From Selaginella moellendorffii (Eukaryota; Plantae; Lycopodiophyta), in assembly GCF_000143415.4 (NCBI RefSeq), contig NW_003314320.1:246586-310585 (forward strand): a stretch of DNA of 64,000 nt, written 5' to 3'. The number at the start of each line of letters is the position of its first letter. The first letter of the stretch is position 1. Under the pieces are notes generated by a model. That model made no database searches and was not told the origin of the DNA. It was given only the letters and a program-made list of their open reading frames with translations. This document shows positions 1 through 31,674 of this stretch, one piece after another. A program made the translations under genes and the position numbers.

Positions 1-3000
1 CGAACCGGTATGCCATTTCCACCACCCGAGGTTCAACTTTTGCCACCAGTTCGTCCGCCAATGAGCGAGAAAGCCATCGCTGGTACCGAGAGATTGATAA
101 TGCTGCACGAGCAGGAGCAAGCCCGTCTCGAGAGGAAACGCAAAGTAAGAAAAACTTGGATTCGGTCCTTTCTCTGCTAAATCCTTTCTCTACCAGGCCG
201 AGGAAGCTCGAATCGCGAAAGAGCACGAAGCACAGGATAAGCGGATGAAAAAGGAAATGGAGAGGCAGGAGGCAATGCGGAGAAAGGTTTAGTTTTGTTT
301 CTTTGGGCCGTGATGGATTTTACTGAGTGAGTTCGTGCTTTTGTATATTTCTTAGCAGAAAGAGGATCAAGAGAGGAAAGAGTCGGAGAAAGTTCACAGG
401 GAGAAGCAAAAGGAGCTTGAAAGGCTGGCTCGGGAGAAAGCTCGCGAAGAGGAGCGCCTCCAGAGGCAGCACAAGAAAGAGTATGAGCGCATGGAAAAGC
501 TATTGCAGAAAGAAAACCAGCGAGTAAGTGTTTGGTTTTTCGTTTCCAAGTTCACTCCTGGACTTTTGTGTTACACAGGTTGCAAAGCTTCGTCAAAAGG
601 AAGAGATGAGACGAGAGAAAGAGGCCACGAAGCTGAGGGCTGCTTACGAGCGAGCCACAGCGAAAAAACTTGCCAAACTTTCAACGGGGCTTATCGATGA
701 CGAGCAGCTGGAGCTGATGCAAATGGGAGCTTTTGTGCAAGGACTTATCTCCGGCTCTGAATTTGATCCAAACAAGAGTAAGAAAATGACACTCTGGTGA
801 AAAGTCTTACACGTTTCTTTTTACTCGTTTTTCTTGCTGAAAACAGTTGAATTGCCGATGTTTCCTCCTGCTTCTGTCCGCATGAAACCACCTATTGGAG
901 TTCCTCCCTGGAATGACTCAAATCACAACGTTGCTAACCTCTTCATGGTATACTCGTGGTTTTCTAGTTATCCTTTGTGTCATACAAAACGTCCTCTCAG
1001 GTGTGGAGAATGCTCACTAACTTCGCAGACGTGATTGGTCTGTGGCCATTCACTCTGGATGAGTTTGTACAGGCGCTACATGACTATGTAAGTGTGATGT
1101 TTCTCTTTCGCTCCTAACTCTACTTCGTTTTTTCTTCAAGGATTCGAGACTCTTGGGAGAAATACACATTGCTTTGCTGAAAACTCTGGTGAAAGACGTC
1201 AAAGACGCGTCACAGGCAGCTGCGATTGGAAGTAACCAAGCACTGGCAGTCGCATCGGGAGGACATCCGGAACTTGTCGAAGCAGTATTGTTTTTTCTTC
1301 CTTTCTTGAGAAAAAACTCCTCATCCTTGGTTTCCAGGCGTATGCATGGGGCTTTGATATCCAAGAGTGGGGACAGCACGTAAATGCTCTAACTTGGCCA
1401 GAGATTTTAAGGCAGTTTGCTCTAGCCTCCGGCTATGGTCCCAGATGGAAGAAGAAAATTACCGAGACAGCTCCTAGCACACCAGTAGCGGAAGTAAGTT
1501 TCTCATTTTTCCAGCTCTAAAGTCTTTCTTGTTCTTACGTGTTTCCTTGCTCAGGGAAAAAATGCCGAGGACGCAGTTGCCAACTTACGTTCCGGTGCCG
1601 CAGCTGCCAATGCTGTCACTCAAATGCGAGGAAGAAACTCCAGCCGTGTTCGAAAGCAGCAGCAGCAACATAAGCCTGTTCTCACTCCAGGCACAGTGAA
1701 ATTCGCTGCGTTCCAAGTTCTCTCGGTCGAAGGGAGCAAAGGCCTCACTATCTTGGAAGTGGTCGACCGTGTCCAGGTAAAAGTATACATCACTCGGAAC
1801 AAAACTGACTTTCCATTTTTTTTTCCAGAAAGCTGGCCTACGCGACTTATCGACGAGTAAGACACCAGAGGCATCGATCTCGGCTGTCCTCTCCCGAGAC
1901 ACAAAACTGTTCGAGCGCGTAGCACCCTCCACGTACTGCGTGCGCCCCGTGTTTAGAAAAAGCCCGGAGGAAGCCGAGGCCGTGCTCCAGGCCGCTCGCG
2001 AGAAGATTCGCCAGTGCGAGAGCCGGCTCTCGGACGCCGAGCCGGAGCCTCTCGAGGAGGATATCATCGAAGAGGCCGAGGAAAGGGAGGAAGAGGAAGA
2101 GTGTGACGAGCAAGATATCGAAGAGACCGAAGAACGAGAAGTTAAAAACGAGACTGCCACCACGACCATTAGCACGATCGAAACCACCGTTACCACCACC
2201 ACCACCAACAATAGTCCTTCGAGTAGTGGAAAAGTGATACTGCGGCTCAAAGTTGGGAAGCTAACGCCAAGCTCGGATGCTCCAGCGGTAGAAAGCGGGC
2301 AGAAGGAGGAGTGTGTAAAGGCCGAGCCGGAGCGGCTTCACAGTAGCTTAGATATGAATGTGGAGAGCGTAGAAGGGCTGGCACAGGAAAGCAGCGATGG
2401 CATGGAGATAGATGAGAGTCAGGTTGGTGAAGTTTGGGTGCAAGGACTCATGGAAGGCGAGTACACGGATTTGAGCGTCGAGGAGAGGCTGTGTGGATTG
2501 GTTGCTCTCGTGGATGCTGTCAACCAAGGGAGCACTGTTCGCTCGGCCATAGAGGTGAGTTTTTCTTTGTTTTCATCACTCAAAGTTTGCATATAAACTT
2601 TGCATTCCAGGAGCGATACGAGGCTGCGTCGGCTCTCAAGAGACAGCTCTGGGAGGAAGTCCAGATCGATAAGCGTCGGCTAAAAGAAGAATGCAGCAAA
2701 GCCGAGGCTGCAAAGGTCGACGAGACGAATCTGCAACAACAGCAAGTGGATGAGAAACCACTGCTGCAAGCTCTGGAGAATGGATCACAGGAGGCTCAGG
2801 AGCAGCAGCTGGATGGAGATGAAGATGGCAGCTCCAATCCTGCGCAAGCCTTGAGCGAAGATCCAAACGAGAGGCAGCAAAAGTGTGCTTCGCAGCACTC
2901 GGACAGGTCCCGGGCCGATATGAAAGCCGATATCAGGTTGCGAGCGGAGAAACTCTACGTTATTCGGTCGCTTCCTCTAGGTTTGGACCGGAGGCACAAC

Positions 3001-5174
3001 CGGTACTGGCAGTTCGTCACTAGTAGTAGCGGACACGACCCTGGGTGTAAAAGGATCTACTTTGAATCGCATGAAGATGGCCACTGGGAAGTCATCGACA
3101 CCGAAGAGGTGAGTGTAGTATCCTTCATCTTTTTGAGTTGCATGGCTTTAGAGAAATGTTTGTTCTCCCAGTTTTCATGGATGGTTTTCGTTTCTTACGT
3201 GCAAGAGTTTTCTTTTCTCTTCTCTTATTGGTCACTCACTAAACAAAGTTTGTGTCCATTTCGGCAGGCTTTGAATGCGCTGATGAACTCTCTGGACATA
3301 AGAGGCACGAGAGAAGCAAATCTCTTCGTAGCTCTCAAGGAGCTTGAAGGCTCGCTAAGGCAAGCCATGAGCAGCTCTAGCACCAAGCAGAACCAAGACC
3401 ACCACCAAAGTCACCACACCGGAAATGGAAATGGAGCTGGAGTTCAAGCTGGAGCTGCGAGTGGAAATGGAAATGGAAACGACTCTTGCGAGGGGAGTCC
3501 ATCTTCCAGCGCCGTGGTTGGAAATGGCGGCAAAGACTCGACGAGCTCCGACGCTCGGGTAGGATCGCTTAAAGTCGAGCTCGGAAGATCAGCGTCGGAG
3601 AACTCCGGTGCCATGGAACGATACAAAGACATGGAAAGGTGGCTGTGGAGGCACTGCAGCGTCAAGGCGCTGCAAAGAGGTGGCGAGAAGCGACGAGAGA
3701 GCGAGAGCGATGGGATGATCGCCGAGTGTGAGTCGTGCCATGACTTGCGCTGGGCCGTCGACAAGCACTGCCCGTTTTGCCACTCCACCGGCGAGGAAGA
3801 TGTCTGGAGTGATTTCTCGCAGCACGTCCGCGACTGCGAGCAAAAGATGATCAGCAGGGATCCCGCCTGGAGAATCCAAGGTGGTGTTCTTCCTCCGCGA
3901 ATACAGTTGCTCAAGAAACTGCTGTTTCTAGTCGAGGTAACTTTCGTTTCTTCTATTGCATTGTCTTGAAACGCTTCCTTCTTCCCTAGATTTGTATTCC
4001 TTGCGAGGCACTTAAGCCTGCATGGTCGACAAATTCTTACAGAAAGGCGTGGTGTCAAAGGCTCAAGGTTGCTTCTTCGGCAGGAGAAATTCTCCAGGTA
4101 GAGTTAAAAGTTTTGGAGCTTGGTGCTATCTTTCTTTATCTCTTTTTCTTGTTTTCTTTGCAGGCATTCATGGATCTGGAGGGAGCAATCGACGAGGACT
4201 GGATCTCTTCCTCGTACGAGTCGATCGAGCAAGTTGGCAGACTCATCGGCATTCAGAGAAAAAATCCCCCCTGGATCCCGCAGACCTCCGCTGCTGTTGC
4301 TCTTCGACTGATGGTCTTTGACTCTTCGATCGCCTACACCGAAGAACAAAAGCAGCAGCTCATGGACAGGCAACGAAGAGTAAGCCATCCATCCATTTCG
4401 CGTGTTCTTTTGCTTACTTTTCCTGAGTTTTTACTTTCGTTCGTGTTTTTAAGTTGAGAATCGGTTCTTACGTTTCTCTCCTTCCAGGTTCCAATGAGAA
4501 GATCGAAAGGAGAGGCCCGCGAAGTTTTATACGAGGCTGGTAGTGCTAGGCCGGCAGAAGGAGAGGAAGACAAAGAGACCAAGGAGGCAGAGTTTAATTC
4601 TCAAGAGGAGGAGCTACCACCACAGTTTTACGAGAGGAGTGGTGGTGACTTTGGAGCTCATCCATCTTGGAGCGCTCGGCAAGAGAGCGCCGCCGTTCTA
4701 CTGGAAGAGGAAGAAGAAGATGATGAAGACGAAGATAAGAGGCTGGCAATGAAAGCTAGTGGCGAGAGTGACGATAGCTCGCAGATGAACTGGGAAGGCC
4801 AGGATTCTTTCGAGGAGCTCGAGCAGCCAGGCCATGGAAGCCTCCATCATCTGGAAGAGCTGGAGATGGAGGAGGAAGAGGATGGATTGATGTTGGAAGA
4901 GGAGGAGGAGCTGAGTGACGAGGAAGAGGAGAGCGAGGAGGAAGAGTTCCAGCAGCAAGCGTCGAGCAGTGATACGGACGAAGAGCAAAACAAGCACGAC
5001 AACTTGGTGGTGGCCAAGAACTTGATCAACATCAATGCGAGCTTGGAAGAAAGCGGTGATGATCTTCATACTGCTGCTGCTGCTAGCAAGATCAATGGCG
5101 GTTCCAGCGAGAGAGTTGTAAACTGCGGCTTGACAAGCGAGTTAGAGTTTGAGCGGGGGACGTATGAGGAGTGA
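1..5174 (+). CDS. RLT: Homeobox-DDT domain protein, RINGLET (RLT1/RLT2-like) ISWI partner; multi-exon, 5' end outside window
   Basis: Spliced translation gives a DDT domain (NLFMVWRMLTNFADVIGLWPFTLDEFVQALHDYDSRLLGEIHIALLK), a HARE-HTH (GTVKFAAFQVLSVEGSKGLTILEV...LSTSKTPEASISAVLSRDTKLFERVAPSTYCVR), WHIM1 (WVQGLMEGEYTDLSVEERL), a WSD motif (PLGLDRRHNRYWQF), a CxxC...HCPFCH knuckle and an acidic tail ending at TGA 5174. Short GT-AG introns join the ORF pieces. Confidence 0.93.
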
Positions 5175-5529
5175 GTGGAAGTTTTACTTTCTCCCATACA
5201 GCGAAGGTGTCTCTCTTCTCGTCGTACAGTTTGATTTGTGAATTCAACCCTGACTTTTGTATGTAATTTCTTCTAGGAAAAAAGGTTTCTTTATTCTATG
5301 AATTTATTGATTGCTTTGAGATGTCCTAGATTAAACATTTGACAGAAGGCAGAAGAGACTCGTTCTTCATTTTCTTGATACTTAAAAAAGTGATGTGTGG
5401 GATTATGATTGAACGCTTTTAAGTCAGAATCTGTGCTACATACCTGATTAAGGTTAGGAAGAATTATAATCCATGTTTGAATTAAATCCAGAATATTCTT
5501 ATTCTAGAGTCTTAGAACCCTAAACGTCC

Positions 5530-5537
5530 AAACCCTA
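5530..5537 (+). promoter_or_regulatory. Telo-box (AAACCCTA) just upstream of gene A; a second GAACCCTAAA lies ~15 nt upstream
   Basis: Exact motif ~20 nt before ATG 5556. The same motif family precedes several housekeeping genes in this window (e.g. ~36526, ~41862, ~49617/49652). Confidence 0.55.
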
Positions 5538-5555
5538 AAGTTGAGGGTGGCATCG

Positions 5556-7211
5556 ATGGATGCATCGGAACTGGAGAGTGACGCAGCGGCATCGGAACTC
5601 GAGAGTGATGCAGCGGCTGAGTTGATGCTTTTGGAAGAGGAGCCATTCGTGAGAGGTAGTGTCAAAGCTTACCTTGCTCAGCCTATGAGGGCTGTGCCTG
5701 CTGGGGTTGACGCATATCATCGTTTCCTGTTGTCGACATCACCTCCTCTGGTGGATCTCTGCCCGCAGGACTTCGAGACGGACTGCTGGGATAGCTTCCT
5801 CTGTGATATGAATTCTTGGTTCTCTGGGCTTCCAGACAGGCCTCTGAGATCAAAGCCAGAAGTGCTGATCGATCTTCATTTCAGAGGTTTCCTTTTCTCA
5901 GCGGCTGACACGGTGCTGCAACTCGTAAAGGGACCCAAGGATGTGTGTGCTGGCATGGCGAGCTATGCCATTGGGAACTGGATAGGTGCGCCGGAGCTTG
6001 TGGTGAGCAGCAAGGGCCATAGCCCGCTTGTTGTTGGTGTCATGGTGGGGGTCATTGACACGGGAGCAGTTGCGAGGGTCTATGCTTACATGCTGAGCAG
6101 TGGTTCTTCGTTTGGGGTCGTCTCATCCTACGCAGAGACGAAGTTTTGCGCGCGCTTGGACAACCGGTTTCTCTTGTCAGACCCTGTTCCACTTCCGCTT
6201 ATCGGCATCAGGTTTCTGATTCACATGGCTACTGGACACAGGGTGCAGCAGAGTACCAGGCCACTACCTTCTCCACGAGGCTTTGCGTCGCGCTTTGCGA
6301 TGGGTGTCTTTGAGACGTGCTGCCATGTCGCAGGGGTGCATCGCATGGCCAAGATGGTCCACGAAGTGGGCAGCTTGGAGGCTCGGGATCTTCAGATTCT
6401 AGAGTTTTTGTCCGGGGCCACGGGAAGGATTTCCGCTGTTTACCGTGCTCTGTACAAGGGCAAAAACGTCGTCGTGAAGATCACGGACTTGACCACAGGT
6501 TAAAAGCTTATTTCTACCAGCCCAGAGCTTTCACCAAATTGTGATTGGCTTTTGCAGGTGTTACAAGTGTCCAAGACTGCTTGATGAAGTGTGTGAGGGA
6601 GGTGGATGCGTACATTCGGCTGCATAAGCTGCAGCGAACTTGTATCCCTTGCTTGTTTGAGTATGGGTTCTTGTGCGGCGGGATGTTCTTCTGTGTGGTG
6701 ATGTCGGATGCTGGCAACTCGGCAGGAGAGGGGTGGTCGCCGGTCGATCAGGACGAGGTAGAGGCCGTCGTGTCTCGAGCACGAAAGGCTCTTGAGAGCT
6801 TTCATGCTCGTGGAGTGGCCATGGGTGACCTTTGCGTCGAGAACATACTTGTTTGGCCACATGACAAGAGAGTCGCCATAGTCGGCTTTGAGGAGTGCCT
6901 GGTGGGTCCAGCTTGTTCTAAGGTGGCCATGGGCAACGATATTATTGCTCTTCGCGAGTGTGAGCTTGTGTTACAGCAGATGGTGTTACAGGAGATGGCG
7001 TCCATGAAAGCGACGCGCTCACGAGACACGAGGGGTACTGCCACAGCGGACTGGGAACTCTGGCTTGCAGACGTGGTCGATTCTGCCGAGTCTGGTGTGA
7101 ATCTAGAGGATACAGAGGAGACAGAGGATACAGAGGATACAGAGGATACAGATACAGAGGTTTGTTTCAGCTTTACTGCTATTAGGTACTTATTATGTCT
7201 TGCAGGAGTAA
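5556..7211 (+). CDS. Gene A, copy 1: Crinkler/Spok-type protein with a degenerate REase-fold domain and a kinase-like (probable pseudokinase) domain
   Basis: ATG 5556. Intron 6499-6557 (GT..TTTGCAG, phase 1) joins ORFs 5541 and 6545 in frame. A probable intron 7160-7205 then gives GAG TAA; unspliced, the stop is at 7216. Kinase motifs: VYRALYKGKNVVVK, REVDAYIRLHKLQRTCIPCLFEYG, HARGVAMGDLCVENILV, and IVGFEE in place of DFE/DFG. The N-terminal GAPELVV...VVGVMV...AVARVYAYMLSSGSSFGVVSSYAETKF...LLSDPV pattern resembles CR/Spok nuclease domains. Confidence 0.72.
7106..7159 (+). repeat. 9-bp coding tandem repeat (GAGGATACA)n encoding the acidic EDT/EET tail of gene A; also at ~21962-22015
   Basis: gaggatacagaggagacagaggatacagaggatacagaggatacagatacagag read directly from the sequence. 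Confidence 0.85.
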
Positions 7212-8299
7212 GCTGACGAGGTTCTCCAGCTTTGTTCTTTCTGTGCTTTCTTGTTTTTTCTTTTCCTTTGCTGTCTTACTTCTAATCCACTCACAAAGAT
7301 TAGATATTCATGATATTTCCCAGCAGTTTGTAGAAGTTTTCTAGAGTTGCTAAGTGGTGGAATAGTGCATGGCCAAACTTCACAGTAAGCAAAGGCAGAG
7401 GTCCACAACGAACGGGAAGCTCCACAAAGCACCTCCACAAACAGCTTTCAGGCTTGTGAACAGTAACTTGTCAAAAGTTGGAGAGGAGAGCAAAGTCAGG
7501 TGGGACTCAGGCATCAGCAGCGGGAGCTGGCACAGACTTTGATGGTGAAGCCAAGGCTTCCTCCACCATCTCTATTCCTGTTGCTCATCTTTGCCTAAGA
7601 GGGTGTTGTGTGGAGGGTTCTTGTCTTTGAGGTGTTAAATTTGATTATAGTGATCACAGGCTTTAGAAAAGCTCGAATTAAGACGGTTCATTGATGAGGA
7701 TAGTTTGAACAGGGCTACGGCCTGGAAGACAGGAGAACATCATATTATACATAGTAGAACATACAAGATGTTCACATTCTAGCTGACTGCCAGGACTTCC
7801 ACCAATGCATGAAAGAACTGATTGCCACCTCCTGTGTTGCCACTGCAAAGCATTAGGACGCATTTGTATATTCTAGGCATCTTCTATGTACTGCGTGGCG
7901 CCTATGCCATTCACTTTTTTGACAGAATTTCCAGGAATGTTTGCTGTGGCGGTGGCGTCAAAGGGACTCCACCACTGTGTTGCTGGCTACGGCTGCTAGG
8001 TGAAGACTGAAAAGGGAACAATGGCTTTCCTCACAACTCATATGACAAGGCAGCAGGTTTAAACCAATTAGTTTATGAGAGAAGCAAAAGATTTTTCCTG
8101 CAGCTTTTCTCTTTGGATTGCCTTGCCAAGCCTATGTGGTTTTCCAGAGGCAAAAAGGGATTGAATTCGTGAAGTTTAGTAGCATGAACTTAATTCTTCT
8201 GACTTTATGTATTTGGACATGCTAATGATTATGATGATGCCTTTTAACAATTGCATTGTTTAAATCAAGGGGCATTTGAGTTAATTATGCAATTCAATA

Positions 8300-11200
8300 T
8301 TCAATCTCTGAATTTTTTATTTCGTACAAAGCCAAATGTATAATGCATAAAGTTGGACATGTTATGGCTAACACTTTGTTAAGATTTTGTGGTACATTTG
8401 CACTAATCACCCATGACAATGCTCTATGACTTGCACAATATTATGAGATATCACTTCTCCCACTTATAGTTGCATATGTTTTAACTCCATTTCCTGTAAA
8501 AGATACTTTTGTTTTTATATGATGTTATTATTACTTATGCTCAAAGGACAAAAGTAAAGACATAATCATGGTTGTGACATTTGTTACTCGGTGTGTGATG
8601 AGATTACTTATATGTATTAGTGTCATTAGTGTTTCCTAGATTAACATCTTCTATTTCTTGGGTGGAGGCCTTCGCATCAATAATTCCTTATAGGTACTAC
8701 TGTAATGGAAAGTCATGATATAAAAATTCTTTAGAGTAATAAGAGTTTTTTATCCTTCTTTTGGAAGAACCATCAAGAAGTTCATTTAGCATCAATTCAT
8801 CAAATATTCACTTTCCAAACTTTTTTTTTAATAAAAGGTCCTTTATTATTTTCTTTATATTGGTTGATATATGTTTAAAAATCTATCTTTTATTGCTCTG
8901 CTTGTTGCCATATATTGCCTTCTACAATTGCATTAGTATAATCATGCTAAATGTGATTTTGAGACTTCTCCCCTTTATATAATACTCTTTCATATCTTTT
9001 TTATATCTCTTGTATTCTCTACTTTATCTTTTTATTTTCACCTCTATTTCCATCATTGTTTTTTCCATTACTTTTTTTTTTTTTTTTCTATTCTTCTATT
9101 CCCTTTTCAAATCACTTGAATGGTTTTTAGTTAAGGCAATTGACTAACTCAAGAAGAAGTATAGTGATCTTTTCACCTTTGATTTATCTTTTGAGGTTAA
9201 GATTGCATCCATCATCCAATCACAATTAAAGATGATTGACCAATTAAGATTTATTTTTAGCAATCGTTATAAAAAAGATTAAAATCTTATATGCAAATAG
9301 TAAGGAAATGTTAGAAAAAAGGTGTTATTTGAAAGTATTGAAATCCTTGAATATGTGAGCTTTATCTTGTGATAAATTTTAATAGGAGCATTTAATTTTA
9401 TATAAACTATTATGTAATAAACGATGTAACTATATCAAATATGTACTCTCTTCCTGATACTATTGTTTGGGGAAAAATCATTAATTCACCAAGTTAAATC
9501 TTGTTTCTAAATACTAAGAAGTGTTAATGGTTGGAAAGAAAAAAAACTTTTTATACACTATTTGATTTGTACGAGTTCTTGGTGATGCTATTTGATTTAA
9601 ACAATACTTTAACATAATAGATGATAAATAAAGTTCTTTATAATATGTCAAAAATGGCATTGACTTCATCAATGATATCTTTATCCTTTTGAAAAGGATA
9701 TGGGAAGAGCACATTTGTGATATCCACAAAATGTTGAACAATTCATGGAAAGATAGTTTGAAATTAAAGTGATTGAAATGCACATTTAGGTCTAAAGACA
9801 TGACTTATCTCGAGTATTATATTTCTCCTGAAGGCTTGTAAGTTAATTTTGATAAATTTATGTCATTAATCATACTTGCACCATTCCAAATGTTGATGAA
9901 GTTATCAACATTATTTTGTATTTGGTCTTAGGACTGCGAGTAAACATTTAAGAAAGTGTTAACAACTCTTTCAAAATTGGCAACTACACTTGATTTTTTA
10001 TCTTGCATATATATACTTTTAGTATTGGTATCGAATGTGTCTTGATGCAAGAGAGCACAAGTGTATTTAGTTAACATCATCCCATTGCATACATCAACTA
10101 TATTACAACTAATAAAAGTGAACTACACAATAAAGAAAGTCTCTCAAAAAGTTTCATGCATACTTGCATGGTTCTTTAATGTTGCTAGAGAGTAATTATA
10201 TTTCAATCACTTTATTATTAAAGTGAAAGAACTTGAATAGTCATATTGTTTAATAGAATTTGAAGCTTTAAATATATAACTTCGAGGTTATTTATTGCTT
10301 GGGGAGTTCTATAGTTGATATTAACATCTTTTCTTTAAGCTTCTTTTGCTTCTTTTTTTTCATCTTATGTTGTTAATAAGCTTATTATTCTAATATTGTT
10401 GGATTTTCTAGATGAGAATATAGTGTCATTAGTAGTTGTTATGTTTGATATTTAATATTTATAAGGTACAAAAACTAAATTTACCTTCTCTTGACAAGGT
10501 TCATGAGATTTAAAAGGTTGAGTTGTGCATTTAAAGACTTCATTATAAGTTTAAGAATTTTGTATCACTCGGATAACTTACCATTTTGGCATTTATATTT
10601 TCACTATTGTCTTAAAGATGACCTTTACTTTGTTTTTTATGACCATTTATGGCTTATGGTGCATTTGATTTTTATTCTACACTTTCTTTATGCTTACTAG
10701 GTGCCTTCGACATTTCTAATCTAAATAGATATATAAAACATTGTCATATGACTAAGAAATATGCATATATCATGGTATAGATATCCATTGGTGTTTCATT
10801 ATATAAACTTTTCTATAGTTATGATCTGATATTGCCAATCCCAAAACCTATGAGCATTCTTCTATTAATTTGAGTCAAGTTTGCTAAACACTTAAACTAT
10901 ATATAAATGGGATAACAATAGTGTTACAACTTGTATCATTAACCACCTATGGAGTATAAAGTAAATATGATTTATTTTTTCTTAATTTTATAATATATAA
11001 TTTATTTAAAGGGCTCCTTACCTAAAAGAGATAGTATTGAATATTACAGCAAGCTGAATTGCAAATTTATAAAGTTTAGCACAATATTTATCTAATGTTC
11101 CTCTAGATTCTAACTTATCAATACGAACACCTGGGATGATTGTGAGGTCTAGATATATGAATAATGCTATATACTATTATTAGTATAGTGGGATAGCTTT
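8300..11200 (-). mobile_element. Heavily decayed L1-like LINE ORF2 relic (APE endonuclease + reverse transcriptase), AT-rich; boundaries approximate
   Basis: Minus-strand motif remnants appear in ORF2 order across the two copies: SKLD and LAISDHN (APE SDH motif, 10821-10829); MQDKKSS (~9990); IWND-type segment; TIIPQII; LGRG; ISILSNNTFF (copy 2 LLDNTFF, a decayed FADDT, ~9325); GCNLNLKR (SGxxxNxxKS-like, ~9200). Many stops and frameshifts. Confidence 0.6.
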
Positions 11201-11653
11201 TAGATAATATATAATAATTTGAAATATTAATTATTAAGCATATAAAATCTATAATTCAGAATTTTCCAACAATAATAGTGGGAGACTTTGATATTAATGA
11301 TGAATCAAAAGGATTAATAATTTGCTACACATTGCATGCCGCAATGCTTAGTTTGCTTAATAGTAGTGTTATTCTTTAATTATAAAAATGTTTATAATGT
11401 ATAAACACAAGATTAATCTTATTTAATATTAATATTAGATGGTAGAATAAACTAGAATATACTAGGAAGTGTTAAGTAAATTATAAACATGTTTATAAAT
11501 TATAAATATAAGATTATGAGATGATAAAATATTCTAGAATATTTAAATATATTTTAAATATATTCACTACCATTATTTTAGCTATGTTCCTAATTCACTC
11601 CCCGCTTAAGCAAACGAAAAATGTGTTTTCTCAAGATTGACATGCATTTGTTA

Positions 11654-11661
11654 AAACCCTA
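11654..11661 (+). promoter_or_regulatory. Telo-box upstream of gene B and its uORF
   Basis: AAACCCTA at the edge of the AT-rich block; retained in copy 2 (~26423). Confidence 0.5.
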
Positions 11662-11944
11662 GGTCTTGGTTATGAAGGTCCTATGCTCTCTAGAAACAGT
11701 GGGCGAAGGGACTCCTCACGTCATCTGGAGATCAATCCTGAAAATCTTCTAGTGGGCGCCAATGTGGAGGAAGAAAGGCTCGATCTCTTCTACGTGGACG
11801 GCGTGAAGAGACAGAAATTCGCTTTCTGGGGTGGAGGTGGTGGTGGAGCAGTGATGGCCGCCAGTGGCAAGAAAGAAGAAAAAGAGATCTAAGTTTTGCC
11901 TTTTATTTCTTGTGTTTGGAACTCTCGAGGTTTTACGGTTTCAA

Positions 11945-14042
11945 ATGAGGGTTTGGATTCAGCATAGCGACCGCCCGGCGTTACAGTTCGAGGTCGGCGC
12001 AGATGGTTTGATCGATGTAGCGGCCGTTTGCAAGCAGTTCCTCCTCGATCCGAATGCAAATCTCCACGTTTCAGGAGTGGCCATCGAGATGATTGCTGCT
12101 AAGGCAAGTAGAACTCTAGATTCTATCTTGGGGGCGGCCACTGAAGGTGGGGATGGCACAACTAAAGACAATGCCTTGATCATAAGGGAGGACCGTTATC
12201 TTTGGTTTCGACACCAGAAACCGGTATTTCTCTTGTTTTCTGAAGTTTTTTGTGCTCATACGTGATGTCCAGGATGGTTCGACCGACACAGTTGGATTAT
12301 TCTCGGACGGTCTTTTTGACTTGCAAGACCTTTGTAGCACATTCGGTCTCGACCCCTCAAGCGCTGTACGTGTTGCTGGCCTTCGTCTAAAGTTTACGGA
12401 CAAAGGAAGGAGTCTACACACTGTCCGGAAGGTTCAAGGTGTTGGAGGCATCGAGGATGGCTCGTCGCGAGATACTGCGTTTACTGTTGAAGGCTCGCCT
12501 GCTACGACTCGTAAGTTATTTCTTTCTTTTTTCTTTTCGTTCTTTTATCATAGGAAACTAAACAACTCCCATGGTTTGCAGCCGGCCTGGCCGTTATTCC
12601 TGACAAATTCAAAGCAGTCTGTAGTGTATCAAACCCGAGCGCCGAAGTTGCCACGCTGGAGGGGATTGAAAGAACTCTGGACAACAAGCTTTTCAAGGAT
12701 ATGAGAGCGGAACGTGGTATGCCGATTGCACTCGGAGCCAGAGCATTCGGAATCTTCATCGATACTTTCAACTCCAAGGCGCCCCTTGAGGCAGGACTTC
12801 TGGCTGCAGCGCGTGACCTTCGTGACCGTATGAAGAAGTTTTATCGGACGGAAGCACTTCGGCGGCAAGAATTCGCGAAGTTCCTCGAATCGTATCTGGA
12901 CGACGACGATAAGTACGTGGTGGTTGCTAACCGGGATGCAGTAAAGTTAAAGATCGGGAAGCGATCTCGGGATGACAGCAGCGTGAGGAGGACTCCTGAT
13001 GTACAGGTGAAAGCCAGGATACTGGGTATACTGGTGGTTCTTCTCACCTGCGAGGTGAAACCGGAGATGGGTTTCAATGGCGAGCCGCTCTTGGAGGCCC
13101 TCTTTTATTATGGCACTGATGCTGCAGAGAGCGTTGTTGTTAGTCGGCACCACTACACAGGCTGTCCAGAGCTGATTGTCGAGCTTGTTGGCCCCAACAT
13201 TCGCGTTGGCGGGGCCATATATCACGACAAGGCCATTTATCAGCCCTTGACCGACTTTCTATCCCTGCTTGATTTCGAGGATGATGCTCACCTGTTCAAG
13301 GTAAGTTTGATACTGGATGGAAGCTTACATTCAGTGCTCGTTTTCGTTGCAGTTGATGCGGTTTCTTCATGCCACTCGACAAGCTTTGAAAGAACTCGTG
13401 AAGGTGTACACTAGCGCTCTTACACTAACTGGAGTGCCTGTTCGAGTAGATACCCTGCACTGGCCGTATGCGCTTCGAGAAAAGTATCCAGATGCTGCTG
13501 CGATCCATCAGATAAAAAACACTCTTGTTTACATGGTTACGACTGGCAGTGGACAGCGAAGGGTGGTGAAGTTTGTCAGGCAGTATGGGGAGGATGCTCA
13601 TGCGCAGTGGGAGCAAGCTGGATATGCACCGCACCATACGATTGAGCAACTCCCAGGCGGTTGGAAAATGGTGGATATGGACTGCCTCACGGCAGCGTAT
13701 GGCTGGCGATCGGTGTTGGAGCTCCGTGGCATGGAGGAGACGACGTCTGATACTTGGAAGACCATGCAGGATGCAGTTTGGCGGGCACTACTGCAGCTAC
13801 AAGCTTTGCAACCTACGATGGTGCATGGTGATCTGAGGTTAAACAACATCATGTACAACGTCCAAACGGGGCAGCCTTGTTTCCTCGATTTCGATTGGGC
13901 AGGACAGGATGAGATGGTTCACTACCCACTGAACTTGAGCTCTAAGATTGCCTGGCCAGCTGGAGCGACGCCCATGAGCAACATCAAGGCGATCCACGAC
14001 CGTGAACTCCTTCAAAAGGAGCTTGAAATGATCTCGACATGA
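11945..14042 (+). CDS. Gene B, copy 1: Crinkler-type effector-like protein with 2x N-terminal header domain, PD-(D/E)xK REase and CR-type kinase (~641 aa)
   Basis: Exons 11945-12223, 12273-12510, 12582-13300 and 13353-14042; all introns are GT-AG and phase-consistent. Nuclease: RTPDVQV...LLTCEVKPEMGFNGEPLLEALFYY...CPELIVELVGPNIRVGGAIY...QPLTDFLSL. Kinase: VVKFVRQYGEDAH...YAP...PGGWKMVDMD...VHGDLRLNNIM...FLDFDWAG...YPLNLS...WPAG...HDRELL. Confidence 0.85.
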
Positions 14043-15399
14043 AGCATGTAAGGGGTGCGGATATTGGGACCACCAGGACGTCCCCTAGCAAGGATACCAA
14101 ATTGTCTTGTCAGAAGCAATTAAGTTCTAAGTAATGGAATAATTTGCTGTGTTTAAGTAATATTTCCCAAGTTGTTAGATATTTAAATTTGCTATGCTTT
14201 TAGTAAGTATTTTGTGTAGTTGTATCAAAGCAATTGCACCCATGTATCTTGCTATTAGAAATTTAAAGCTCTAGATCCTGTCAAGACAGGTTCTAAAGCT
14301 GTTATGACATGATTTTTAATTAAACTTCCTATTCAATAACAACAAGTTGAATAACATTATAGTGGCATTAGGTGTTATTGGCCTTGAGGGACGAGCATAT
14401 ACTTTTATTTTGCACTGGTAAACAACCAAGATCTAAAGTCCATAAGGTCACTTCAACATTAAGCCATGTTAATTTGACATATAGATTTTAGATTTATAAC
14501 TAATACTAAAAGTTTGAGTATAAATCCCTTTTCAAGAACTATTATTCTTTTTATAATTTCTTCTTGTGTAGCCATTTAATCTTTCAATATGCAAGGGCCA
14601 CAACATAAAAGGCTGTCCATAGAAATGCTATAGAAGACTGCTAGTGACAATTATTACTTATGGCTTAACATAAAGGTAAACTTAAGGTAAGGAGGTTTTA
14701 ATTTAGAAATTTAAACAACAGTTTATATTATTAAACCTTGATTTTAACAGCAAAGCATCTACAATATGAATAGAGGTACATTGATGTTAAACTCTTACCA
14801 TCTAATATATAGAGCCAAATCAAAGTATTTAATATATATAATGTTTCTTTCCTCAGCTTTATCCTGTTACATATACAATAATTTTAGCAAGGGACAATTT
14901 AGAAAAATCCTCTCTCTTTCTTGTTTGGATTAGTGTTGCATGAGTCTAGTGTCCAGAGGCTTTGATCACGATTTGCTTTCTCATTTTTCGAGTTAGTTTT
15001 GATTCTTTGACTCCATATGAGTGATAACAAAAAGTTCTGTACCTAGCTTCCCATTGATTTAGTTTGCAAATATGATGTTTTCTTTGGATGGTATGCAGCT
15101 CTTTGTGACTATGTGAGTGTGAATGAGAATATCAGACGAGACAAAGAGAAATGAAAAGTGGCTGGCTTACTAATATTAATTAAAAACTAGTAGTAAACAT
15201 TTAAATATTTAGGATTTTATAAATGAGTAACTCACTTTAGAATTACACTAACAAACTAATCCTTACATTGAAGATGCCTTCCTCTTCACAGTGAGGAAGG
15301 GAGGGAAGGGAGGGCGGGGCATGATGATAGCTGTGGGGATCCATGCCTATTGTTGTCTGGTAGATAGCATACTTGATGGCTCCCACTGTTCTTGCTAGC

Positions 15400-16740
15400 A
15401 GCCATTGCTCAAAAGCCTATGCCATCCACCAGCTATAATCGTCTATTGGACTCTTGAGCACCTCGAGATCAAGGCCAAGCTTTGCTGTCCATTTCTTGAG
15501 CTCAGATCACCAACCTCCATTTCGCTCGTATACACAGGCTGATGGAGTCATCGATAGCTTAAATCAAGAGCTTTCGTTTGCAGCTGCCGCTGGGTCTTCA
15601 CTTAATTGATCATCCGTTTCCACACAAGGAGCTCCAAGGGCCATAATTCAGACTCGAACAGATGATAGGATATGACACATCTCCTGTATGAAGCTCCATG
15701 CGGATAAAGTGGTATTGGAGCTCCTCCACTTGATCCCAGAGAGCATCCATCATTCCTAGACAAGATGACCGTGGAGAGTTCAGCTATGAAAAGTTGTCGC
15801 TTGGCACTTCAGTGGGTGACAAGTGCATTGGAACAATCTGAGTGGAATGCAAAGTATGCACCACGTGCCGCCGTAATGCAATCTATGATCCCCACCTTTC
15901 GTGGATTGTTCTTGTGGATAATATATCTGAGGTACTTGTAATGGTCTACTTTCTGAAGTGCAATCCCATGGTAGGAGCATACCCTGGCCCAACACCATTG
16001 ACTTCCATGCATGTGGCCTCTCACAGAATTCGCTGAGTGCATTGAGGTAAGCTGCATTTGGCGAGCTGAGGAGCCGAACAGAGTATATCATTTACGTAAA
16101 GCAGTGCATATAAATACATTCCCGAGAGTTGGTATGGCGTGAGTGTTTTGCCCTGTATCATGGACTCTAGTGCGTCAATGTAGACTGCGAAGAGTCAGCC
16201 GTATGCTTTTCTTTAACGTCCGTTGCCAAAAGACGATTACGGCTACGCATGAAGTGGCGGTTTCTAGCACAAGCATAGCAGCGGCGCAAATGCAAGACAG
16301 TCTCAGGCATTGCAAAGTCCCCTCTCGCCATGGCGTTGCTTGCTACTACAAACCCACATGGGCCTTATGGATGGTAATCTGCTCACTTAGGAGAGATTTC
16401 AATGCCAGGATAGCCCGCCCAAGTGGAATGTGTCCTTTCTCCACCAGATGCCCAGTGCCGTGAGTTATGTGCTTAACAGCTCAGGCAGCAAACTGAGATC
16501 CAAAAGCTAGAGGTTACACATGTGAGACCTGGGCCTTGCAAGATGGGGGCCTGAGCATTGTATATTACTTGCTGCTGCGGCGTGCTAAAATCAACTGAGT
16601 CCCCAAGTCAAACCATGTGCAAATTCCCTCCACTGCACAGCGCTGAGTTCACAGGTCCCTGCTACAGCACCTTTAGCTGGGATAAGAGTGTTGTTGACAC
16701 TTTCAGAGGGAAATTGCGTCTATCTTTGCATTCAGGTGGA
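15400..16740 (-). mobile_element. Decayed non-LTR retrotransposon reverse-transcriptase fragment (different family from the 8.3-11.2 kb relic); boundaries approximate
   Basis: Minus-strand frameshifted remnants: LFAVYIDALESMIQG (~16150-16195), LSGMYLYALLYVND (a decayed LLYADD, ~16090-16125), LNALSEFCE, and LQKVDHYKYLRYII...AARGAYFAF (YKYLG thumb region, ~15850-15960). Confidence 0.75.
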
Positions 16741-16933
16741 GGCTAAACCCTAATAGTAATAATTAGGTATTATTATTATATGCGATGGTTGTAGCGGAGA
16801 TGATAAGCATAAAAGAAATACGCTTATCAAAAAGTATATTCTCATTCAAGCAAGATTCCAGAATCTTGATTTGTTTCTTAAATTTACATTTGAAACATTA
16901 CATTTGAACGTTACTAGGGTTCTCACACATATC

Positions 16934-17407
16934 ATGGGGATCCCGGCGCGAGGGGATGGCGGCGAGCAGCGGAGGTATTTCAGAGAAACGCCGGATGTGA
17001 GCGTCACGCCGGTGGATTTCCTGTGCTCCACGAAGGAGAGCGATCTCTTCCTGGCGTGGAATGTGACCAAGATCCAGGGATGGTGGAAATCTAGGGCCTG
17101 CGCTAGAGAATTCGCTGCCATGGTTTCTCCTTTCTCCGCTCTCTTGAGATTTCCTTCGTTTCCCTTTTGGTATTTCAGCTTTTTCTCTCTTTTTTATTTT
17201 GTTTTGTTTTGGCAGAAAGAAGCTGCGCGTTTGCTGCAAGCGGCCTGGAGGAAGCACCGAAATGCCAGGAGAATACGAAGAAAACGGGGCCGATCTAGAA
17301 ATTCACTGCACGCTGCTGCATGGACGATCCAACGCATGACCGATTGTGTGGATTGGTTGCTCTCGTGGATGCTGTCAACCAAGGGAGCACTGTTCGCTCG
17401 GCCATAG
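16934..17407 (+). pseudogene. 5' fragment of the IQ-motif MFI/C11orf65-like gene, truncated at the duplication junction and reading out of frame into RLT sequence
   Basis: Near-identical to 31675-32078 up to ...AAWTIQR (17335). It then reads the filler plus RLT DNA in the wrong frame (MTDCVDWLLSW...RP*), with TAG at 17405-17407. Confidence 0.8.
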
Positions 17408-20030
17408 AGGTGAGTTTTTCTTTGTTTTCATCACTCAAAGTTTGCATATAAACTTTGCATTCCAGGAGCGATACGAGGCTGCGTCGGCTCTCAAGAGACA
17501 GCTCTGGGAGGAAGTCCAGATCGATAAGCGTCGGCTAAAAGAAGAATGCAGCAAAGCCGAGGCTGCAAAGGTCGACGAGACGAATCTACAACAACAGCAA
17601 GTGGATGAGAAACCACTGCTGCAAGCTCTGGAGAATGGATCACAGGAGGCTCAGGAGCAGCAGCTGGATGGAGATGAAGATGGCAGCTCCAATCCTGCGC
17701 AAGCCTTGAGCGAAGATCCAAACGAGAGGCAGCAAAAGTGTGCTTCGCAGCACTCGGACAGGTCCCGGGCCGATATGAAAGCCGATATCAGGTTGCGGGC
17801 GGAGAAACTCTACGTTATTCGGTCGCTTCCTCTAGGTTTGGACCGGAGGCACATCCGGTACTGGCAGTTCGTCACTAGTAGTAGCGGACACGACCCTGGG
17901 TGTAGAAGGATCTACTTTGAATCGCATGAAGATGGCCACTGGGAAGTCATCGACACCGAAGAGGTGAGTGTAGTATCCTTCATCTTATTGAGTTGCATGG
18001 CTTTAGAGAAATGTTTGTTCTCCCAGTTTTCATGGATGGTTTTCGTTTCTTACGTGCAAGAGTTTTCTTTTCTCTTCTCTTATTGGTCACTCACTAAACA
18101 AAGTTTGTGTCCATTCCGGCAGGCTTTGAACGCGCTGATGAACTTTCTGGACATAAGAGGCACGAGAGAAGCAAATCTCTTCGTAGCTCTCAAGGAGCTT
18201 GAAGGCTCGCTAAGGCAAGCCATGAGCAGCTCTAGCACCAAGCAGAACCAAGACCACCACCAAAGTCACCACACCGGAAATGGAAATGGAGCTGGAGTTC
18301 AAGCTGGAGCTGCGAGTGGAAATGGAAATGGAAACGACTCTTGCGAGGGGAGTCCATCTTCCAGCGCCGTGGTTGGAAATGGCGGCAAAGACTCGACGAG
18401 CTCCGACGCTCGGGTAGGATCGCTCAAAGTCGAGCTCGGAAGATCAGCGTCGGAGAACTCCGGCGCCATGGAACGATACAAAGACATGGAAAGGTGGCTG
18501 TGGAGGCACTGCAGCGTCAAGGCGCTGCAAAGAGGTGGCGAGAAGCGACGAGAGAGCGAGAGCGATGGGATGATCGCCGAGTGTGAGTCGTGCCATGACT
18601 TGCGCTGGGCCGTCGACAAGCACTGCCCGTTTTGCCACTCCACCGGCGAGGAAGATGTCTGGAGTGATTTCTCGCAGCACGTCCGCGACTGCGAGCAAAA
18701 GATGATCAGCAGGGATCCCGCCTGGAGAATCCAAGGTGGTGTTCTTCCTCCGCGAATACAGTTGCTCAAGAAACTGCTGTTTCTAGTCGAGGTAACTTTC
18801 GTTTCTTCTATTGCATTGTCTTGAAACGCTTCCTTCTTCCCTAGATTTGTATTCCTTGCGAGGCACTTAAGCCTGCATGGTCGACAAATTCTTACAGAAA
18901 GGCGTGGTGTCAAATGCTCAAGGTTGCTTCTTCGGCAGGAGAAATTCTCCAGGTAGAGTTAAAAGTTTTGGAGCTTGGTGCTATCTTTCTTTATCTCTTT
19001 TTCTTGTTTTCTTTGCAGGCATTCATGGATCTGGAGGGAGCAATCGACGAGGACTGGATCTCTTCCTCGTACGAGTCGATCGAGCAAGTTGGCAGACTCA
19101 TCGGCATTCAGAGAAAAAATCCCCCCTGGATCCCGCAGACCTCCGCTGCTGTTGCTCTTCGACTGATGGTCTTTGACTCTTCGATCGCCTACACCGAAGA
19201 ACAAAAGCAGCAGCTCATGGACAGGCAACGAAGAGTAAGCCATCCATCCATTTCGCGTGTTCTTTTGCTTACTTTTTCCTGAGTTTTTACTTTCGTTCGT
19301 GTTTTTAAGTTGAGAATCGGTCCTTACGCTTCTCTCCTTCCAGGTTCCAATGAGAAGATCGAAAGGAGAGGCCCGCGAAGTTTTATACGAGGCTGGTAGT
19401 ACTAGGCCGGCAGAAGGAGAGGAAGACAAAGAGACCAAGGAGGCAGAGTTTAATTCCCAAGAGGAGGAGCTACCACCACAGTTTTACGAGAGGAGTGGTG
19501 GTGACTTTGGAGCTCATCCATCTTGGAGCGCTCGGCAAGAGAGCGCCGCCGTTCTACTGGAAGAGGAAGAAGAAGATGATGAAGACGAAGACAAGAGGCT
19601 GGCAATGAAAGCTAGTGGCGAGAGTGACGATAGCTCGCAGATGAACTGGGAAGGCCAGGATTCTTTCGAGGAGCTCGAGCAGCCAGGCCATGGAAGCCTC
19701 CATCATCTGGAAGAGCTGGAGATGGAGGAGGAAGAGGATGGATTGATGTTGGAAGAGGAGGAGGAGCTGAGTGACGAGGAAGAGGAGAGCGAGGAGGAAG
19801 AGTTCCAGCAGGAAGCGTCGAGCAGTGATACGGACGAAGAGCAAAACAAGCACGACAACTTGGTGGTGGCCAAGAACTTGATCAACATCAATGCGAGCTT
19901 GGAAGAAAGCGGTGATGATCTTCATACTGCTGCTGCTGCTAGCAAGATCAATGGGGGTTCCAGCGAGAGAGTTGTAAACTGCGGCTTGACAAGCGAGTTA
20001 GAGTTTGAGCGGGGGACGTATGAGGAGTGA
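17345..20030 (+). pseudogene. Duplicated 3' half of the RLT gene (lacks DDT/HARE exons; probable pseudogene)
   Basis: Near-identical to 2490-5174. It starts mid-WHIM1, is not in frame with the upstream MFI-like exons, and carries missense changes including RRHNRYW>RRHIRYW. Confidence 0.8.
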
Positions 20031-20411
20031 GTGGAAGTTTTACTTTCTCCCATACAGCGAAGGTGTCTCTCTTCTCGTCGTACAGTTTGATTTGTGAATT
20101 CAACCCTGACTTTTGTATGTAATTTCTTCTAGGAAAAAAGGTTTCTTTATTCTATGAATTTATTGATTGCTTTGAGATGTCCTAGATTAAACATTTGACA
20201 GAAGGCAGAAGAGACTCGTTCTTCATTTTCTTGATACTTAAAAAAGTGATGTGTGGGATTATGATTGAACGCTTTTAAGTCAGAATCTGTGCTACATACC
20301 TGATTAAGGTTAGGAAGAATTATAATCCATGTTTGAATTAAATCCAGAATATTCTTATTCTAGAGTCTTAGAACCCTAAACGTCCAAACCCTAAAGTTGA
20401 GGGTGGCATCG

Positions 20412-22067
20412 ATGGATGCATCGGAACTGGAGAGTGACGCAGCGGCATCGGAACTCGAGAGTGATGCAGCGGCTGAGTTGATGCTTTTGGAAGAGGAGCC
20501 ATTCGTGAGAGGTAGTGTCAAAGCTTACCTTGCTCAGCCTATGAGGGCTGTGCCTGCTGGGGTTGACGCATATCATCGTTTCCTGTTGTCGACATCACCT
20601 CCTCTGGTGGATCTCTGCCCGCAGGACTTCGAGACGGACTGCTGGGATAGCTTCCTCTGTGATATGAATTCTTGGTTCTCTGGGCTTCCAGACAGGCCTC
20701 TGAGATCAAAGCCAGAAGTGCTGATCGATCTTCATTTCAGAGGTTTCCTTTTCTCAGCGGCTGACACGGTGCTGCAACTCGTAAAGGGACCCAAGGATGT
20801 GTGTGCTGGCATGGCGAGCTATGCCATTGGGAACTGGATAGGTGCGCCGGAGCTTGTGGTGAGCAGCAAGGGCCATAGCCCGCTTGTTGTTGGTGTCATG
20901 GTGGGGGTCATTGACACGGGAGCAGTTGCGAGGGTCTATGCTTACATGCTGAGCAGTGGTTCTTCGTTTGGGGTCGTCTCATCCTACGCAGAGACGAAGT
21001 TTTGCGCGCGCTTGGACAACCGGTTTCTCTTGTCAGACCCTGTTCCACTTCCGCTTATCGGCATCAGGTTTCTGATTCACATGGCTACTGGACACAGGGT
21101 GCAGCAGAGTACCAGGCCACTACCTTCTCCACGAGGCTTTGCGTCGCGCTTTGCGATGGGTGTCTTTGAGACGTGCTGCCATGTCGCAGGGGTGCATCGC
21201 ATTGCCAAGATGGTCCACGAAGTGGGCAGCTTGGAGGCTCGGGATCTTCAGATTCTAGAGTTTTTGTCCGGGGCCACGGGAAGGATTTCCGCTGTTTACC
21301 GTGCTCTGTACAAGGGCAAAAACGTCGTCGTGAAGATCACGGACTTGACCACAGGTTAAAAGCTTATTTCTACCAGCCCAGAGCTTTCACCAAATTGTGA
21401 TTGGCTTTTGCAGGTGTTACAAGTGTCCAAGACTGCTTGATGAAGTGTGTGAGGGAGGTGGATGCGTACATTCGGCTGCATAAGCTGCAGCGAACTTGTA
21501 TCCCTTGCTTGTTTGAGTATGGGTTCTTGTGCGGCGGGATGTTCTTCTGTGTGGTGATGTCGGATGCTGGCAACTCGGCAGGAGAGGGGTGGTCGCCGGT
21601 CGATCAGGACGAGGTAGAGGCCGTCGTGTCTCGAGCACGAAAGGCTCTTGAGAGCTTTCATGCTCGTGGAGTGGCCATGGGTGACCTTTGCGTCGAGAAC
21701 ATACTTGTTTGGCCACATGACAAGAGAGTCGCCATAGTCGGCTTTGAGGAGTGCCTGGTGGGTCCAGCTTGTTCTAAGGTGGCCATGGGCAACGATATTA
21801 TTGCTCTTCGCGAGTGTGAGCTTGTGTTACAGCAGATGGTGTTACAGGAGATGGCGTCCATGAAAGCGACGCGCTCACGAGACACGAGGGGTACTGCCAC
21901 AGCGGACTGGGAACTCTGGCTTGCAGACGTGGTCGATTCTGCCGAGTCTGGTGTGAATCTAGAGGATACAGAGGAGACAGAGGATACAGAGGATACAGAG
22001 GATACAGATACAGAGGTTTGTTTCAGCTTTACTGCTATTAGGTACTTATTATGTCTTGCAGGAGTAA
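20412..22067 (+). CDS. Gene A, copy 2 (degenerate REase-fold + pseudokinase-like)
   Basis: Same exon structure as 5556-7211 (offset 14856). The only amino-acid difference seen is HRMAK>HRIAK. Confidence 0.72.
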
Positions 22068-26000: not shown

Positions 26001-26719
26001 TGGGATAGCTTAGATAATATAGAATAATTTGAAATATTAATTATTAAAACACATAAAATCTATAATTCAGAATTTTCCAAAAATAATAGTGGGAGACTTT
26101 GATATTAAAGATGAATCAGAAGGATTAATAATTTGCTGCACATTGTGTGCAGCAATGCTTGGTTTGCTTAATAGTACTGTTATTATTTTTTATTATTCTA
26201 ACTAATCAAATGACATTTTATAATTATAAAAATGTTTATAATGTATAAATACAAAATTAATCTTATTTAATATTAAATATTAGATTAGAATATACTAGGA
26301 AGTGTTTAGAAAAATTTATAAATTATAAATATAAAATTATAACAACCATGAGATGGTAAAATATTCTAGAATATTTGAATATATTTTAAATACATTCACT
26401 ACTAACTCTCATGCATTTGTGAAAACCCTAAGTTTTGGTTATGAAGGTCCTATGCTCTCTAGAAACAGCGTGCCAACATTAAGGGACTCCTCACGTCATC
26501 TGGAGATCAATCCTGAAAATCTTCTAGTGGGCGCCAATGTGGAGGAAGAAAGGCTCGATCTCTTCTACGTGGACAGTGTGAAGAGACAGAAATTCGCTTT
26601 CTGGGGTGGAGGTGGTGGTGGAGCAGTGATGGCCGCCAGTGGCAAGAAAGAAGAAAAAGAGATCTAAGTTTTGCCTTTTATTTCTTGTGTTTGGAACTCT
26701 CGAGGTTTTACGGTTTCAA

Positions 26720-31490: not shown

Positions 31491-31674
31491 GCTAAACCCT
31501 AATAGTAATAATTAGGTATTATTATTATATGCGATGGTTGTAGCGGGGATGATAAGCATAAAAGAAATACGCTTATCAAAAAGTATATTCTCATTCAAGC
31601 AAGATCTTGATTTGTTTCTTAAATTTACATTTGAAACATTACATTTGAACGTTACTAGGGTTCTCACACATATC

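Follow-up and report, generated by a model that had tools for sequence, protein, structure and literature searches.

A PD-(D/E)xK nuclease of the restriction-endonuclease (REase) fold joined to a kinase is a common architecture among the Crinkler/RHS-type (CR) proteins (PMC5289972). For one of them, CRN8 from Phytophthora infestans, the same article describes the REase domain as toxic and the kinase as regulatory. In the Spok proteins of Podospora, a predicted PD-(D/E)xK nuclease kills and an ELK-type kinase gives resistance within one protein, with a Cys/His cluster located between the two domains (PMC6660238). These two sources agree with the literature premises of a preliminary description of the locus presented here, namely a frequent REase+kinase architecture in CR proteins, and a killing nuclease with a protective kinase in Spok. 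CR proteins as a class are already on record from land plants, and Crinkler-type toxin-like proteins occur in non-pathogenic eukaryotes, land plants included. Our locus lies in a window of 64,000 nt from Selaginella moellendorffii (the whole stretch of DNA that was analysed; all sequence coordinates are those of the window, whose position 1 corresponds approximately to position 246586 of scaffold GL377624.1 in GCA_000143415.2, as given by an exact match of the single-exon GXM protein) and harbors two genes, named gene A and gene B, of which gene B is a new, unannotated, tandemly amplified member of the already known CR REase+kinase family.

The locus represents a well-bounded case in a reference genome, in which a nuclease-kinase gene missed by the annotation is present in at least four near-identical tandem copies, accompanied by a decayed, hypermutated, retroelement-like spacer and by an orphan pseudokinase-like gene. 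Both genes are unannotated, since the gene table of a second locus of the same array (L006, described below) lists WSD fragments and a 298-amino-acid acidic protein only, without a model for gene A or gene B, and no protein identical to either was found among 15 billion sequences. The locus gives a correction for the Selaginella annotation, as well as an entry point to the question of whether CR genes in plants act in defence, are selfish or survive as relics.

Gene B, a nuclease-kinase gene of the CR family

Genes A and B were searched, folded and compared exon by exon. The first copy of gene B was located on the + strand at 11945..14042 (ATG at 11945, stop codon at 14040-14042), encoding a protein of about 641 amino acids in four exons (11945-12223, 12273-12510, 12582-13300 and 13353-14042), separated by three GT..AG introns that measure 49, 71 and 52 nt. 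From the N-terminus, and all on the + strand, it comprises two modules corresponding to exons 1 and 2 (11945..12510), which are internal repeats of each other (30% identical, E ~1e-6 to 4e-8), a PD-(D/E)xK (REase) domain (12701..13300; Asp at 12998-13000 and E-V-K at 13052-13060), and a kinase domain of the APH/ELK type (13512..14036; HGD at 13824-13832 and DFDW from 13887).

A search of 1.84 billion representative proteins with the nuclease exon (12584-13300) recovered just 17 relatives, and a profile search based on the family alignment gained only a few extra members. The family was detected in S. moellendorffii, Adiantum capillus-veneris, A. nelumboides, Rhizophagus irregularis, several agaricomycetes and a few metagenome/Logan contigs; the S. 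moellendorffii relatives corresponded to three other loci, each with a near-identical protein pair on two different scaffolds. The nuclease and kinase exons matched the same proteins, with a conserved order along the protein, and the plant members obtained the top scores. Four of the fungal relatives (P0004, P0013, P0025 and P0026) carried the Pfam Crinkler N-domain, placing the gene B family among the CR-type REase+kinase proteins.

The residues expected at both active sites were conserved in the family. In the nuclease columns, Asp was present in 22/26 sequences, Glu in 22/26 and Lys in 26/26, and all three were found in both window copies of gene B. For the kinase, 19 relatives were aligned with gene B: the Lys was present in 18 of them (the other having a gap), and the Asp, the Asn, the D-x-D and the C-terminal H-D in all 19; gene B retains the complete set, and its match to the Pfam APH family (1.1e-8) passed the curated cut-off. 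The PD…EVK, HGDLRxxN and DFDW motifs recognized in the preliminary description fall in these invariant or near-invariant columns, and its assignment of gene B to the Crinkler/RHS-type REase+kinase proteins was upheld by the homology of both domains and by the intact catalytic residues. Judged from its sequence, gene B apparently encodes a CR-type protein whose nuclease and kinase are predicted to be competent.

An AlphaFold model of the nuclease exon, obtained with the family alignment supplied, reached a pLDDT (predicted local distance difference test) of 81.5 and a pTM (predicted template modelling score) of 0.82. In this model the Asp starts beta2 and the ExK stands at the end of beta3, after which come a long helix and then a hairpin, a predicted arrangement that is the PD-(D/E)xK strand layout. 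The top of the Foldseek list was rich in PD-(D/E)xK proteins (Hjc, RecU, R.SwaI, MGME1, YaeQ and DUF820, all at E >= 0.03), a likeness of the model that is consistent with a PD-(D/E)xK nuclease, short of proof; sequence searches of the PDB with the gene B exons returned nothing useful.

For the N-terminal modules, exons 1 and 2 had no Pfam match at E <= 1, to the Crinkler header (PF20147) or otherwise. When they were compared by hhalign with the aligned Crinkler domains of the relatives, the probability was < 1%, and they had no significant similarity to the one N-terminal module that the plant paralogues possess. These modules may have a divergent ubiquitin-like fold. The Crinkler N-domain is itself doubled in two Suillus proteins (P0025 and P0026), so that tandem modules occur both there and in exons 1 and 2 of gene B; no resemblance in sequence was detected from one kind of module to the other.

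Gene B shares with the CRN8-type CR effectors a PD-(D/E)xK nuclease followed by a kinase on one polypeptide. It differs from CR effectors in lacking a detectable Crinkler header, with two repeated N-terminal modules instead, and in belonging to the host genome of a plant that is no pathogen, so that it does not encode a secreted effector. The gene B searches recovered no oomycete CRN, and the link between gene B and CRN8 rests on the classification given in the literature. The best matches for the nuclease and kinase exons were plant paralogues with the same two domains in the same order, from S. moellendorffii (LOC9640805/LOC9648345, P0002/P0020; LOC9631495/LOC9646017, P0003/P0022; and LOC9657201, P0024) and from Adiantum capillus-veneris (GOP47_0006035/0006684, P0001/P0018). 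The kinase motifs HGD…N…DFDW are common to gene B and these paralogues, the majority of which also have its EVKPE nuclease motif, whereas their nuclease domains are 27-37% identical to that of gene B and they have one N-terminal module against two in gene B. These paralogues are annotated, single-copy within ±10 kb and without an A-like neighbour, in contrast to the amplified and unannotated gene B. In P0003/P0022 (locus L003) a V-V-K was observed, with Val replacing the catalytic Glu of ExK, next to an intact HGD…DFDW kinase. This pair is probably a natural nuclease-dead variant in the same genome, and, by analogy with Spok, would suit a 'resistance-only' role better than gene A.

The Spok proteins resemble gene B in having a predicted PD-(D/E)xK nuclease and then a kinase in one protein. 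However, no Spok-named protein appeared in the gene B sequence searches, and no Cys was present in the gene B linker, taken as the stretch that runs from the last part of exon 3 through residue 70 of exon 4; by the features checked, with neither a Spok match nor a Cys/His cluster, gene B is not a member of the Spok family. Spok also works without a second gene, so the analogy predicts no role for gene A. AACRNL (PMC12957317) is likewise a CR-derived toxin-type gene that a non-pathogen has retained and multiplied, its N-terminal header being degenerate or missing and repeats lying alongside, but it carries an ADP-ribosyltransferase toxin domain and no nuclease-kinase, is found in animals, and was amplified via adjacent transposons.

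The tandem array and the divergence among its copies

Both genes are present twice in the window, in two tandem units. Self-BLAST and per-segment divergence delimited unit 1 to 2490..17335 (14.86 kb), and self-comparison delimited unit 2 to 17345..32078, with a junction filler of 9 nt, free of Ns, at 17336..17344. Unit 1 includes the 3' part of an RLT-like (WSD) gene, an acidic-protein gene, gene A, an AT-rich spacer, gene B and a 5' fragment of the downstream gene. The left breakpoint falls within the RLT-like gene and the right one within the 5' part of the downstream gene; since genes A and B both lie in the middle of the segment, they were copied together, as had been proposed. The genic parts of the two units are about 99% identical. 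The second copy of gene B (26720..28814, +; exons 26720-26998, 27048-27285, 27357-28072 and 28125-28814) differs from the first by six amino-acid changes and one codon indel, with the catalytic motifs retained.

Two further units, X and Y, were found upstream of the window in locus L006 (GL377624.1:209731-231747), which was reached by a search with the RLT-like open reading frame (ORF) that led to an annotated 533-amino-acid 'RLT1-like' fragment (P0037). Unit Y is 99.3% identical to unit 2 of the window, spacer included, and its genes A and B are intact. Unit X is of the unit-1 type; its gene B is intact, whereas its gene A and its spacer have each suffered one deletion, which removed the greater part of gene A and some of the spacer. 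The array holds at least four intact copies of gene B and three intact copies of gene A. Units X and Y as one pair, and units 1 and 2 as the other, make up a higher-order repeat of about 43.8 kb, which may have arisen by genuine duplication or by the joining of two haplotypes into a single scaffold. For the 14.86-kb duplication itself, an assembly-gap artefact was discarded, given that there are no Ns and that the junction with its 9-nt filler was seen twice, being identical in L006.

The exons of genes A and B were free of stops in all the copies seen, and their introns were short (49-71 nt), GT..AG and the same in both window copies, confirming that open frames and splice sites are kept in the two copies of each gene. 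Their GC content at third codon positions (GC3) was like that of the neighbouring host genes. The window holds land-plant genes for IRX15/GXM, a PRAF-type RCC1-FYVE protein, an MFS transporter, a TAZ/PHD/KAT11 acetyltransferase and an RLT-like DDT/WSD protein. Contamination or a recent horizontal transfer of genes A and B was rejected on the basis of the host-like GC3, the host-type introns of 49-71 nt and the host genes on either side.

Most segments of units 1 and 2 differed by 0.6-0.7% substitutions, with a transition:transversion ratio of about 1.2, and the value for gene B (0.53%) was that of the background. Gene A (5556-7216) showed a single substitution (0.06%) and the 381 nt 5' of it (5175-5555) none, so that just one substitution distinguishes 5175-7216 from 20031-22072. 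The spacer between genes A and B, AT-rich (GC 28%) and CpG-depleted, located at 7485..11640 in unit 1 and approximately at 22340..26409 in unit 2, where it is 99.3% identical to the unit-Y spacer, was far more divergent: 11.5% substitutions when bounded at 7485-11640, and 12.7% when cut at 7899-11640 (358 transitions and 85 transversions). Its C/T differences occurred in every sequence context, and its sharp borders left both genes and their upstream regions unaffected, a pattern that looks like the silencing-linked C-to-T hypermutation of a decayed retroelement. A 69-codon upstream ORF without a family match (11683-11892) was observed within the conserved 300 nt 5' of the gene B start; this stretch diverged by 2.6% between units, above gene B itself.

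Gene A and its relation to gene B

The first copy of gene A was located at 5556..7216 (+; ATG at 5556, stop codon at 7214-7216), with exons 5556-6498 and 6558-7216 flanking a GT..AG intron of 59 nt (6499-6557); a possible short 3' intron would alter the final residues only. The second copy (20412..22072, +; exons 20412-21354 and 21414-22072) presented one nonsynonymous change relative to the first. The ends, intron-containing structure and shared orientation given for genes A and B in the preliminary description were exact, and the two sequences are dissimilar, as it stated, their mutual similarity being not significant. The gene A protein of about 520-535 amino acids begins with an orphan N-terminal part of about 270 amino acids, continues with a kinase-like core and ends in an acidic tail of repeats. 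The tail is a Glu/Asp-Thr C-terminal stretch that corresponds to a 9-nt tandem repeat of 5.3 copies at 7105-7160, with its counterpart in unit 2.

The kinase-like core was recognized from its catalytic-loop segment (6746..6892, +; Asp at 6827-6829, Asn at 6842-6844 and G-F-E at 6884-6892). Exon 2 matched the NCBIfam family LanKC (NF038151) at 3e-7 and 29.2 bits, over only about 50 residues and with a score far under the family cut-off, and gave 42 weak matches in the PDB, every one of them a kinase (42/42; 8sao among the LanKC matches). Against the hidden Markov model (HMM) of the B-family kinase it scored 17.4 bits, above the maximum of 9.3 reached by 500 shuffles, and the hhalign comparison with the corresponding profile gave a probability of 91% (E = 9e-7); this match was limited to the catalytic loop, and LanKC scored higher (29.2 vs 17.4 bits). 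Bacterial LanKC/ELK-type Ser/Thr kinases are the closest named match to this segment, from which gene A differs in having Gly where LanKC has the metal-binding Asp, and in the absence of lanthionine synthetase domains. The kinase alignments placed G-F-E at the D-F-D/E/G site of the relatives, with the catalytic-loop Asp and Asn present, corroborating the replacement of DFx by GFE reported earlier. As it lacks the metal-binding Asp, the core is predicted to be a pseudokinase, or no more than an atypical kinase. Read directly, the last part of exon 1 would resemble a glycine-rich loop followed by the beta3 Lys.

Nothing comparable was obtained for the N-terminal part. A word-index homology search with exon 1 returned zero proteins, a weak result given that distant relatives seldom share 5-mers, and the first 270 residues had no family in Pfam, NCBIfam or PADLOC and no sequence match in the PDB. 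The B-family nuclease HMM gave no reportable score for exon 1, with 500 shuffles as control, and hhalign against the nuclease profile gave a probability of 0.1%. A single-sequence AlphaFold model of this exon was unusable (pLDDT 34), and Foldseek on that model was uninformative. The sole local alignment between A and B was not significant (E 0.16-0.77), and paired the 'PELVV' of A with a later strand of B, 'CPELIV'. On these searches, gene A is a lineage-restricted orphan. The earlier proposal of an REase fold in its N-terminal half hence found no signal in any of these family, profile or structure databases, and the equation of its PE…GVMV with PD…ExK was not reproducible, as 'PELVV' aligns off the PD strand. 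An REase+kinase layout common to both genes was true of gene B for the two domains and of gene A for a kinase-like core alone; nor was the view of gene A as a disarmed paralogue of gene B supported, since in addition to the missing REase signal the intron positions differ and the kinase likeness is only at the superfamily level.

The linkage of the two kinds of gene was examined by tblastn with the A exons in the ±10 kb around P0002, P0003 and P0024 of S. moellendorffii and P0001 of Adiantum. No A-like gene was found within ±10 kb at these four other B-type loci, with a sensitivity that is limited if gene A is fast-evolving, while the B exons detected the central gene alone at each locus. Linkage of A-type and B-type paralogues elsewhere was accordingly not observed; on these sequence searches, the missing neighbours are evidence against linkage, not proof.

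We consider it probable, though well short of certain, that gene B is a resident, amplified and self-contained CR-type nuclease-kinase gene, and that gene A is an orphan predicted pseudokinase co-copied by segmental duplication. By extension from CRN8 and Spok, gene B would act as a self-contained metal-dependent nuclease, its own kinase domain would control or neutralise this nuclease in cis or in trans, and the gene would serve a conflict role, defence or selfish, without need of a second gene; as gene B keeps both predicted active sites, the logic of these systems calls for no partner. Several results weigh against this reading. The models of both genes are missing from the public S. moellendorffii annotation, and Foldseek found nothing in the PDB under E = 0.03 for the nuclease model. 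The variable codons among the copies of gene B (9 nonsynonymous and 4 synonymous) do not demonstrate constraint, and those of gene A were 1 nonsynonymous and 0 synonymous, counts that are too small for judging constraint either way. The divergence of gene A (0.06%) was significantly lower than that of the rest of the unit outside the spacer (0.74%; Fisher p = 3e-4), suggesting that gene A is not merely drifting; gene conversion would explain this value as well as selection, and a recent conversion tract is at least as likely, since synonymous and upstream sites are unchanged too. A-type relatives, and hence linkage elsewhere, could be missed by a word-index search, and the lack of signal in the N-terminal part of gene A does not in itself make that part a non-REase.

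The preliminary description viewed gene A as a degenerate CR-type REase+kinase paralogue, partner of an armed gene B in a toxin/antidote, drive or immunity module. The two genes are adjacent, co-oriented and both intact in three units, gene A has a kinase-fold core with the metal-binding Asp replaced and is unusually well conserved between units, and the strand/helix pattern after its 'PELVV', from direct reading and a low-confidence model, is loosely like the core of gene B. Nevertheless, we regard this module as decidedly unlikely, because exon 1 of gene A showed no sequence or profile link to the family nuclease domain, the best (non-significant) local alignment sets its motif on another strand of gene B, intron positions differ, the four other B-type loci had no A-like neighbour, unit X kept gene B and lost most of gene A, and the breakpoints in the flanking genes account for the co-duplication. 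By Spok logic, an antidote requires an active kinase, of which gene B has a predicted one of its own and gene A probably none; the missing metal-binding Asp makes gene A a poor candidate for a kinase antidote. A toxin/antidote pairing is at present not supported, being speculation with some evidence against it, and nothing testable here indicated a functional partnership. The bolder form, a two-component plant conflict module amplified as a unit in a lycophyte, with gene B as executioner and gene A as its fast-evolving and catalytically dead relative in the role of restraint, sensor or decoy, is very improbable; if true, no pair of this kind would have been described from land plants before. 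It is also unlikely that gene A, gene B or both are young relics, recently amplified ORFs that are silent or barely expressed and are drifting to pseudogenes in a repeat-rich and probably methylated region. This would fit the absence of public models and of identical proteins, the nearly neutral codon changes of gene B with its codon indel, the heavily C-to-T mutated spacer alongside and the copy of gene A already deleted. On the other hand, the four copies of gene B and three of gene A are all stop-free with all splice sites intact, and the hypermutation ends sharply short of both genes and their upstream regions; gene B retains every invariant catalytic residue in a family only ~30-37% identical, which implies long-term constraint before the amplification. 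An improbable alternative is that gene B alone is a Spok-like selfish killer/resistance gene, amplified by drive and not by host benefit. Its domain order, nuclease then kinase and both predicted to be active, is that of Spok (PMC6660238), its distribution is patchy and lineage-specific with fast divergence, it is tandemly amplified, and a Crinkler-like selfish element has been reported in free-living eukaryotes (PMC12957317). Against it stand the absence of Spok proteins from all the search results, the Cys-free linker, and an amplification mechanism that was ordinary segmental duplication.

Other features of the window

The surroundings of the two genes had been described as littered with LINEs (long interspersed nuclear elements). 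In the unit-2 spacer, a short ORF (24417..24578, +) matched the end of the reverse-transcriptase profile RVT_1 of Pfam below threshold (E = 0.0084, 16.3 bits, cut-off 29.6), probably representing a decayed retroelement remnant. The Pfam scan, which covered 30 ORFs taken from the spacers and from downstream of them, detected no other reverse-transcriptase or endonuclease domain, and neither long terminal repeats nor terminal inverted repeats were found in the spacer; the earlier impression was weakly supported, by this single sub-threshold remnant.

At the junction between the two units (16871-18824), the RLT-like (WSD) gene, represented by its 3' part, is fused to the 5' fragment of the downstream gene. 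In unit Y, the counterpart of this fused fragment is annotated as a 533-amino-acid 'homeobox-DDT domain protein RLT1-like', a model that probably stands for a truncated or chimeric copy instead of a complete gene.

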